Origin: Macrostomum lignano
Lineage: Eukaryota
Length of the DNA: 64,000 nt
Direction of reading: 5' to 3'
Assembly: GCA_002269645.1 (NCBI GenBank)
Contig: NIVC01001811.1
Span: 496,001 to 560,000 of the forward strand
The notes below the pieces were generated by a model, which saw only the letters and a list, made by a program, of their open reading frames with translations, did no database searches and was not told where the DNA came from. Positions 17,761 to 61,789 of the stretch are shown here, in pieces. The position numbers and the translations under genes were made by a program. Each line of letters opens with the position of its first letter. The first letter of the stretch is position 1.

Positions 17761-19449
17761 ATGTCCTACCTTGTGCCTCCTTCGGCCAGCCAGTACGTGC
17801 CTTCGCAGAGCATCCACTCCATGCCGGATGCGGTGCTCCTGGCTCCACCGGCTCATTCGGCGCAGACCGAGCGTCGAGTCAGCAGTCCGGAAACTTCGTC
17901 CACGGCGGACACGAACCCGGGCCCGTCTGGCTCGGGAAAGTCAGCGGCCGCCTGCGGTAGCAGTCGGCACGGCCATCAGCATCAGACGCCGGAGTTTCTC
18001 CTTGTTGTGCCGGACGCCTGTGGCTCTTCCGTGTCAATGTCAGGCTCGGGCGCCCTGCTGCCGCCTGACGAGATTGACAGATTCGAGCGGGCGATCAACG
18101 AGAACGACGCCGACTTGGTGAAGCTGATCGTCCGCCGGCACGCCCTCGGCCTGTGCCAGCGTCGCTGCTCCCCGGCAGCGTCAACCAATTTGGCGCAGGA
18201 GGACGCTGCATCTCGAGTTGCGTTTTCCATCATGACGGACGTCGAGGTTCTTCCGGTCTCGGCTAGTCAGGCATTTCTGCTCCGATCGCGCAATAACTCG
18301 GCCGTCAGCGATCAGTATTCGTTTTTCACTGACGACGAACCGGCGTTAGGCACCGACGGCTCCCTGCCCCGAGGTCGCGGCGCCGTCCTGCGCAACTGCC
18401 TGCACTCTGCCATCGCGTCCGACTCCGTCGACTGCCTGCACGCCCTCCTCCGCATGGGCTTCGAGCCAAATCGCTGCGGACAGATTGTCAACTGGCAGCC
18501 GTTCTCCCGCTGGCTTCAACAGGAGCTGCGCCGCTGCACGACCCGCAGCCCGACAGCTGATTGCAGCTCGCCGCTGCCGGAGCTCAGCTTCGAGCACGCG
18601 TCTCGGATCGAGTCGCTTCGTAGAGCAATCTGTGCCGCACTGGGAGACGCAGACCCCATGGAGCAGGTGGCCTTCCTGCGCTGCCTGGTGCAGGCCAAGC
18701 CGTACAGAGACTTACTGTGCGGCTCTCCGCCCATCCTGCTCGCCACTCTGCTGAACAAGAAGCGCAGCGTCTCCTTGCTGCTCCGCTACGGAGCCAAAGT
18801 CAACGTACACGACTGCCTGCACAATTCGGCGCTGCACCTGGCGGTCTTCAACCTGCCGGAGTCGACCAGCATTCTGCGGCTGTTGCTGGCGAACGGAGCT
18901 TCAACCTGCTGCCGCAACTGCCTCGGCATCAGTCCGAACAACATTGACGGTGTGACTCTGCGGCAGGAGTCGCAACTGCTGATCAAAGCGGCACTGAGCT
19001 TCTCGTTTGCGTCGCGTTCAGCCGCAGGAGCATCCGGGGGTCCTGGAGGTCGCCGTCGACAGCAGCAGCAACAACAACAACAGCAGCAGCAGCAGTCGCA
19101 GAAATCCGGCGGTGCGCATCAGAAACGTTCGCGCTGGCAGGCGGCCACAAAGCTGGCCAAGGAGCGCGGTTTCCTCGGACGATCGGCCGCGACAGCCGTC
19201 GGATCCGAACGCAGCGAGTCGGTCAGCATGTCCTTCACCGATTCGGAGGTGGCGGCCGGCATGTCGATTGTCACTTCGACCGGCGTCTCGGGCTGTCCCG
19301 GCTCTGCTGCTGGTGCAACGTCGGCGACTCTGACCTCGACAACAGGCGCCACGGCGGCTGCTGCCGCGGCTGCTGTCGTAGCTTCGTCGACCAACAGCGC
19401 CACGGGTACCAGGATCCCCTCTGGCCCTGCTGCCGCCGCTGCCAATGAG
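17761..19449 (+). CDS. PLCE1: PLC-epsilon exon 1: ankyrin-repeat region plus polyQ/polyA tail
   Basis: ATG preceded by an in-frame stop at 17695. Ankyrin-like motifs [51 protein letters not shown] and [25 protein letters not shown]. Donor GAG|GTCAGT, phase 0. Confidence 0.7.

Positions 19450-61789: not shown

Follow-up and report, generated by a model that had tools for sequence, protein, structure and literature searches.

The 64,000-nucleotide (nt) stretch of the Macrostomum lignano genome analysed here (assembly GCA_002269645.1, contig NIVC01001811.1, positions 496,001 to 560,000 of the forward strand; hereafter the window) very probably contains a single ~44-kb gene for an orthologue of phospholipase C-epsilon (PLC-epsilon) of ~4,000 amino acids (aa), located on the + strand at 17761-61789. 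PLC-epsilon joins Ras/Rap/Rho signalling to phosphoinositide hydrolysis, and it matters in heart disease, nephrotic syndrome and cancer. The flatworm protein would carry an N-terminal extension composed of ankyrin (ANK) repeats, a helical domain, a long disordered linker and lobes F2 and F3 of a FERM domain. A first-pass annotation of the window had proposed a single PLC-epsilon gene of this size with ~1,900 extra N-terminal residues, and the results below bear this out.

The whole 44-kb span chains in frame, free of stops, through exons with GT-AG borders. Exons were chained by our own dynamic programming, scored on codon log-odds and on the GT/AG sites after masking of tandem repeats. Unaided, the chaining returned 29 exons and 11,697 nt; with a bonus for homology it returned 28 exons and 12,261 nt. 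The model used here was curated by hand against orthologous loci and has 25 exons, 12,009 nt and 4,002 aa (Table 1). Chain models over 17761-61789 range from 25 to 28 exons, 11,964 to 12,261 nt and 3,987 to 4,086 aa. The choice of exon-1 donor and of three optional mini-exons shifts the totals (to 11,964 or 12,195 nt), and the 26 exons and 12,111 nt reported earlier fall inside the range. The gene begins with an ATG at 17761, the start of a 590-codon open reading frame (ORF), and a TGA at 61787-61789 closes the last exon; an AATAAA lies downstream, at 61919.

Codon usage, in a scoring that took in many exons never used for training, is positive in the chosen frame for every one of the 25 exons (0.04-0.50 bits per codon). 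The other two frames are negative for all exons, save a marginal +0.04 in one frame of exon 24. All 96 intronic open stretches of at least 40 codons score negative (mean -0.34). Because codon usage separates all exons from intronic stretches, the chain is no by-product of searching. Provisional parts of the model are the exon-1 donor, exons 24 and 25 and, at 25.8-26.7 kb, the three mini-exons. There are three candidate exon-1 donors (19449, 19453 and 19498); codon usage over 19450-19498 is of the non-coding kind (-0.68 per codon), which favours 19449 or 19453. In the mini-exon region (25825..26670), the database model P0001 takes partly different pieces. At the 3' end, the gene could instead read through to a stop at 58281, but codon usage makes this less likely than an end at 61789 (-0.53 for the read-through against 0.30 for exon 24). 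Exons 24-25 resemble the C-terminus of Patella PLC-epsilon weakly (z = 3.4; 3 of 500 shuffles reach the score), and among the PLC-epsilon tails compared only that of Patella reaches this value.

To judge from its sequence, the C-terminal half is PLC-epsilon beyond reasonable doubt, with the order RasGEF/CDC25, PH, EF, X, Y, C2, RA1, RA2. The 3' half had already been read in this way, and both the Pfam matches and PLCE1 as best relative in the PDB agree. Pfam was run on the full model, and RasGEF, X, Y, C2, RA, Ank_2 and FERM_M all exceed their curated cut-offs. RasGEF matches aa 1971-2093 with 40-45 bits (cut-off 23.1), upstream of the region that aligns with the PH domain of PLCE1; PI-PLC-X matches aa 2777-2924 (201.7 bits), PI-PLC-Y aa 3169-3260 (103.8 bits), C2 aa 3289-3375 and RA aa 3687-3781. 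The catalytic motifs SSHNTY, ELDCHDG, IYHG and RIDSSN are all kept. Among solved structures, the PH-EF-X part scores 359 bits against PLCE1 (9ax5), ~170 against PLC-zeta and PLC-delta and ~160 against the gamma and beta types; C2-RA1 aligns best to PLCE1 9ax5/6pmp and RA2 to PLCE1 2byf/2c5l. The closest named database proteins are mostly PLC-epsilon or unnamed PLCs, with eta, beta and delta ranking lower.

The nearest database proteins of all are the M. lignano fragments A0A1I8HHU3 and A0A1I8I8R9. One of these two, P0003, is identical to the sequence of exons 19-21 save for a deletion in the X-Y linker, as expected of DNA from this flatworm or a very close relative. A0A1I8I8R9 (P0004) is a PLC-epsilon fragment with 68% identity in its best local alignment (EF and X); it is likely a paralogue, which would fit the duplicated M. 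lignano genome.

Vertebrate PLCE1 (9ax5, 9b13, 6pmp, 2byf, 2c5l) has the same CDC25, PH, EF, X/Y with X-Y linker, C2, RA1 and RA2 in the same order. The two proteins differ in what precedes CDC25: ~500 residues in mammals, and here ~1,900, with ANK repeats, the helical domain and FERM F2-F3.

The extension was compared with a metagenome scaffold from the ENA (MUNK22-1_SAMEA4777424 scaffold_2804; L001), which encodes the RasGEF-EF-X protein P0051 and has a PLC core with its nearest matches in Toxocara, Plectus and Trichinella. The ANK repeats proposed in the first-pass annotation are confirmed by Pfam: Ank_2 (cut-off 27.3) reaches 29.3 bits with the full model and 35.3 with exon 1 by itself, and Ank reaches 31.5 on exon 1, while Ank_3 and Ank_4 are below threshold at aa 211-239 of exon 1. 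The ANK domain of exon 1 is 28.6% identical to an L001 ORF (E = 1e-6), which itself scores 57.4 bits with Ank_2. Also in exon 1, an in-frame, poly-Q/Ser-rich stretch of 297 nt (18952-19248) is treated as an intron by two database models, P0001 and P0002. It is open in frame and has GT at 18950-18955 and AG at 19247-19248, and could be an alternative intron.

The region at aa ~580-1140, which had been called ARM-like, is a strongly conserved, predicted helical domain without a family match. It has no match in Pfam, and none in PDB sequences at E <= 10; the one hint of ARM repeats is a match to KAP (E = 0.044) in the L001 orthologue, not in the window. The tail of exon 3 together with exon 4 (alignment A1) is 43% identical between the flatworm and L001 over 159 aa, which exceeds the identity of FERM (29%) and GEF (33%). 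Exon 2 and the start of exon 3 align to one L001 ORF (4986-5387; Smith-Waterman z = 8.3, reached by 0 of 300 shuffles).

A FERM domain had also been proposed. Its F2 lobe (FERM_M: 37.9 bits on the spliced exons 7-10 segment, 30.9 on the full model; cut-off 23.8) and a talin-like F3 lobe are present, but the F1 lobe was not detected: neither FERM_N nor another beta-grasp fold matches upstream of F2 in Pfam at E <= 1. The ~60 residues before F2 read as helical, with poly-Q ahead of them. Talin heads are the best solved relatives of the F2 end and F3 (E = 1.5e-8), and an F2-F3 profile from three species finds talin at 2.4e-10 and kindlin-2 at ~1e-4. F3 adjoins the CDC25 domain, with only ~25-30 residues between them. 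A REM domain, proposed in the same annotation, was not recovered; Pfam RasGEF_N has no match at E <= 1 either before FERM or between FERM and GEF. AlphaFold2 was run on single exons without an alignment, and these models were not used (pLDDT 40.5 for F3 and ~40 for ANK).

The FERM module is best compared with the heads of talin and kindlin (1mix, 3g9w, 3ivf; kindlin-2 5xpy). The F2 end and the PTB-like F3 align, and the Trp of the talin KRW motif is kept, here as LRHW. Unlike in these proteins, there are no detectable ubiquitin-like F0/F1 lobes, no talin rod and no kindlin PH insert, and the FERM module is fused directly to a RasGEF. KRIT1 (CCM1) is a Rap1 effector in which ANK repeats directly adjoin a complete F1-F3 FERM, so that it too combines ANK and a FERM-type module in one Rap-signalling protein. 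In the flatworm protein, however, ANK and FERM are ~1,200 residues apart, no F1 is detected and F3 is closest to talin; the F3 exon scores 13.8-15 bits with Pfam KRIT1_FRMD8_FERM_C (E = 0.03-0.08), below the cut-off of 29. The spacing, the sub-threshold score and talin as best F3 speak against a KRIT1-like ANK-FERM identity. A Nudix domain was not reported in the window protein either.

The best indication that these modules belong to one gene comes from other genomes. In tblastn, the model matches L001 colinearly on one strand within 10 kb (Table 1), where the existing annotation has separate prokaryote-style ORFs only. The order ANK, helical domain, linker, FERM F2-F3, RasGEF, PH, EF, X is the same, with 29-43% identity per module, and an in-frame chain runs from ANK to PLC. 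The L001 gene differs in being compact (~10 kb), its introns being only tens to hundreds of nt long (42-792 nt in the chain), and the contig breaks off once the Y box has begun. The spliced FERM-GEF segment of L001 scores 37.4 bits with FERM_M and 89.4 with RasGEF. An open frame at 9582-9872 holds the last F3 helix, the linker and the first GEF helices, and the FERM-GEF junction is therefore exonic in L001. A second scaffold, L002, nearest to mite sequences, has FERM, RasGEF, PH, EF/X, Y/C2 and RA in colinear order, and a JGI metagenome contig from a relative of L001 (L007) has ANK, the helical domain and the linker, also colinear. Since the module order is shared by flatworm, nematode-like and mite-like loci, 17761-61789 is read as one gene. 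The same comparisons are also strong evidence that the long layout arose before these protostome lineages diverged. An under-described and possibly ancestral invertebrate form had been suggested from the window sequence, and the colinear L001 and partly colinear L002 support this suggestion.

The same loci bear on whether two neighbouring genes have been misjoined, namely an ANK-helical-FERM gene in exons 1-11 and a conventional PLC-epsilon that starts at exon 12. Exon 12 has an in-frame Met (RRNVMLRCD) just after an upstream stop, and a tardigrade PLC-epsilon model begins just before the GEF with nothing related upstream. Published descriptions of invertebrate PLC-epsilon give only PH-X-Y-C2-RA; for example, a locust study gives only PH, X-Y, C2 and two Ras-binding domains (PMC12422182). 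On the other side, a single uninterrupted exon of L001 encodes both the last part of F3 and the first part of the GEF, and the FERM-GEF gap is ~195 nt in L002 and 796 nt in the window, where it is mostly minisatellite. The conserved module order in three lineages leaves no room for a promoter or terminator, and the splice sites that join exon 11 to exon 12 are canonical and agree in phase. A misjoin is thus very improbable.

Several points nevertheless weigh against a single gene with this extension. The model is read from genomic DNA. The 529-aa linker of exon 6 has no significant similarity to L001, which has an equivalent open linker exon of 741 aa; the link from ANK and helical domain to FERM thus depends on frame, codon usage and conserved order. 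Not every PLC-epsilon has the extension: the 10 kb upstream of the tardigrade PLC-epsilon locus yielded neither ANK nor FERM sequence. When the ANK exon was searched exhaustively, generic ankyrin proteins came back and no clear orthologue, and none of these proteins matches the model elsewhere. P0001 and P0002, which alone among database models reach into exon 1, are unreliable; they fuse an upstream forkhead exon to it through tandem repeats. The taxonomic labels of L001 and L002 are putative, taken from nearest matches only. An internal promoter may produce a short GEF-PLC isoform, as there is an in-frame Met early in exon 12. The putative function of the extension, in which adhesion or membrane cues would be linked to Rap exchange and PIP2 hydrolysis, is a reasonable suggestion. 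It should be noted that the remaining databases and loci are of limited reach. Word-indexed homologue searches with exon 1 or the spliced N-terminal half found only P0001 and P0002, which are unreliable self-matches, but the proteins listed there are all of ~1,250 aa or less, and the absence of full-length orthologues among them is no evidence. The Trichinella locus (L005) reaches no further than the GEF, which lies 9 kb upstream there; sequences from Rotaria (L003, L009), Logan (L006) and a mite-like source (L008) start too near the PLC core to cover the extension.

Within a single gene, the long form might be a minor isoform, the main product being a shorter GEF-PLC protein that arises by alternative splicing or through an internal promoter. 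Mammalian PLCE1 variants differ at the N-terminus. Large flatworm introns, of 7.8 kb and 5.0 kb, have room for internal promoters, and inverted minisatellite arrays around exon 3 could favour its skipping; a recent review's name for the mammalian form, PLC-epsilon-1a, also implies variants (PMC13022664). Against this, codon usage in all the N-terminal exons is of the coding type, and their frames are unbroken. The helical domains of the flatworm and the nematode-like orthologue share 43% identity, which points to purifying selection on the long form, and a minor role for it appears improbable.

One might also regard the N-terminal exons as decaying remnants or an assembly artefact, with only the PLC-epsilon half functional. 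The genome is duplicated and very rich in repeats, with tandem arrays over 30% of the window, a 68%-identical paralogue exists (P0004) and several exon boundaries are not fixed. Yet ~5.7 kb of N-terminal coding sequence has neither a frameshift nor an in-frame stop, codon usage is positive in all exons, domain matches are above threshold and the order is colinear with independent assemblies from other organisms. Decay or artefact is hardly credible on this evidence.

Table 1. Exons of the curated PLC-epsilon gene model (window coordinates) and tblastn matches of the model on the nematode-like scaffold L001 (L001 coordinates). "Codon" is the codon-usage score in bits per codon.
Feature	Sequence	Position	Strand	Content and evidence
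Exon 1	Window	17761..19453	+	Start ATG, low-complexity N-terminus, ankyrin-repeat domain (~aa 200-390), poly-Q/Ala-rich tail
Three optional mini-exons	Window	25825-25897, 26369-26471, 26612-26670	+	From ab initio chaining only; codon +0.17, +0.07, +0.29; without homology support
Exon 2	Window	27227..27414	+	Helical domain start; P0001 also joins exon 1 to exon 2
Exon 3	Window	30243..31127	+	Helical domain, Gly/His-rich insert; last 90 aa conserved with L001 5841-6068; codon 0.48
Exon 4	Window	31718..31964	+	Most conserved helical-domain block (LLCLLLQ...YYTNHTTK...), also in L007; acceptor 31718 picked from L001 alignment
Exon 5	Window	32055..32218	+	Helical domain end; within L001 alignment; codon 0.35
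Exon 6	Window	34927..36513	+	Long low-complexity linker (Ala/Gly/Gln runs) with short helical ends; codon 0.50
Exon 7	Window	36599..36670	+	FERM lobe F2 start; 13 residues align with EGKFESDERINDEY of L001
Exon 8	Window	38278..38487	+	FERM F2; Pfam FERM_M; matches in L001 and L002
Exon 9	Window	43501..43677	+	FERM F2; within FERM_M match (aa 1619-1793) and L001 alignment
Exon 10	Window	45327..45440	+	F2 end and F3 start; talin alignment; L001 and L002 matches with 42-50% identity
Exon 11	Window	45651..45954	+	FERM F3 (PTB-like lobe), talin/kindlin type; L002 match
Exon 12	Window	46751..46980	+	Short linker and RasGEF (CDC25) start; L002 match
Exon 13	Window	48057..48202	+	RasGEF; Pfam; 54% identity to L001
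Exon 14	Window	48526..49002	+	RasGEF; Pfam
Exon 15	Window	49479..49842	+	Poly-Q linker and PH region start; C-terminal part aligns with L001; codon 0.33
Exon 16	Window	50317..50540	+	PH domain; alignment with PDB PLCE1 9ax5 (query 70-248)
Exon 17	Window	52280..52556	+	PH domain; PLCE1 alignment
Exon 18	Window	53059..53635	+	PH-EF linker and EF hands 1/2; PLCE1 alignment
Exon 19	Window	54300..56191	+	EF hands, catalytic X box, X-Y linker, Y box; Pfam
Exon 20	Window	56349..56507	+	C2; P0003 joins ...AAIVSLQ straight to IISGQF...; Pfam C2, PDB
Exon 21	Window	56604..56706	+	C2; P0003; L002 match
Exon 22	Window	56789..57189	+	C2 end and C2-RA1 linker; PDB PLCE1 alignment; L002 match
Exon 23	Window	57265..58225	+	RA1 and RA2; Pfam RA; PDB 9ax5, 2byf, 2c5l
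Exon 24	Window	59010..59147	+	C-terminal tail, provisional; codon 0.30; without homology
Exon 25	Window	61416..61789	+	C-terminal tail, basic-hydrophobic motif then TGA, provisional; codon 0.32
ANK match	L001	4149-4595		
Helical domain match	L001	5841-6557		
FERM match	L001	8748-9833		
RasGEF match	L001	9950-10618		
PH match	L001	10733-11443		
EF/X match	L001	11948-12898		
Y box start match	L001	13277-13345		

Tandem repeats are abundant in and around the gene. TRF finds 59 arrays in the window, amounting to 19.5 kb or 30% of its length. The larger introns (17000-62500) mostly contain minisatellites with units of 4-63 nt, often in 25-110 copies, and several arrays are open in all frames and mimic exons (29.2-30.2, 33.2-33.7 and 39.7-41.3 kb). 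Inverted arrays of the 15-nt unit TCGGGATCAGGGAAA bracket exon 3, at 29214-30179 and 31164-31586, with ~64 copies upstream and the reverse complement downstream; the arms are at least 204 nt long and 85-87% complementary. Pairing of these arrays in the pre-mRNA could lead to skipping or circularisation of exon 3. The window also has three very long microsatellites: (ATGG) with ~905 copies over 3.6 kb (6894-10498), (AGAT) with 211 copies (13609-14452) and (TGTC) with 113 copies (37651-38099). At 8-10 kb, the (ATGG) array accounts for a GC skew near 1 and for "ORFs" that are open in all six frames.

A forkhead-domain exon lies 16 kb upstream of the gene on the same strand (1620-1830, +; Pfam Forkhead 73.6 bits on P0002). 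P0001 and P0002 join it to PLC-epsilon exon 1 via the tandem repeats at 1935-2819 and 15534-15958. This fusion is probably an annotation artefact, and the forkhead exon a separate gene. On L001, the upstream neighbour (440-1941, +) has EF-hand_3 and ZZ domains and ends ~1.9 kb before the ANK exon; its product looks dystrobrevin- or dystrophin-like.

Taken as one gene product, the ~2,100 C-terminal aa would form a canonical bifunctional enzyme that works like mammalian PLC-epsilon. The CDC25-type RasGEF would act as a Rap/Ras exchanger, the X/Y barrel, with its intact catalytic motifs, presumably hydrolyses phosphatidylinositol 4,5-bisphosphate (PIP2) and phosphatidylinositol 4-phosphate (PI4P), and RA2 would receive Ras/Rap-GTP input. 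The N-terminal extension may be a targeting or scaffolding module; its ANK repeats and PTB-like F3 lobe would then anchor the enzyme to phosphoinositides or to protein tails close to the membrane. Because F3 keeps the Trp of the talin KRW motif, docking on an NPxY-type tail or on acidic lipids is the most economical guess. With such docking, Rap would be activated and phosphoinositides hydrolysed only at certain sites of the membrane or of adhesion. An autoinhibitory role of the extension is an equally open possibility.

Literature searches found no description of ANK or FERM in PLC-epsilon, although automated invertebrate annotations may already hold such models. Neither FERM nor ankyrin comes up in a survey of how RasGEFs evolved (PMC3141262), and no description of the putative FERM-RasGEF fusion defined here was found in the literature searched. 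Invertebrate PLC-epsilon models are often fragments of ~1,000-1,200 aa, which are probably 5'-truncated. We infer that the protostomes, at least, started out with the long form and that some lineages later shortened it.

According to a 2026 review (PMC13022664), the N-terminus of mammalian PLC-epsilon is not homologous to any other protein, is given no secondary structure by AlphaFold3, and poses open questions as to both structure and function. Recognisable modules at this position in three protostome lineages provide concrete, testable hypotheses for what the N-terminus does. It is rather unlikely, though conceivable, that the ANK-helical-FERM extension belonged to the ancestral bilaterian PLC-epsilon and that the conserved vertebrate N-terminus is its degenerate remnant. 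If this were true, the N-terminal function would be talin-like docking on receptor tails or phosphoinositides, which would place Rap activation and PIP2/PI4P hydrolysis at adhesion or membrane sites, and the long forms of invertebrates would make the function of the N-terminus directly testable.

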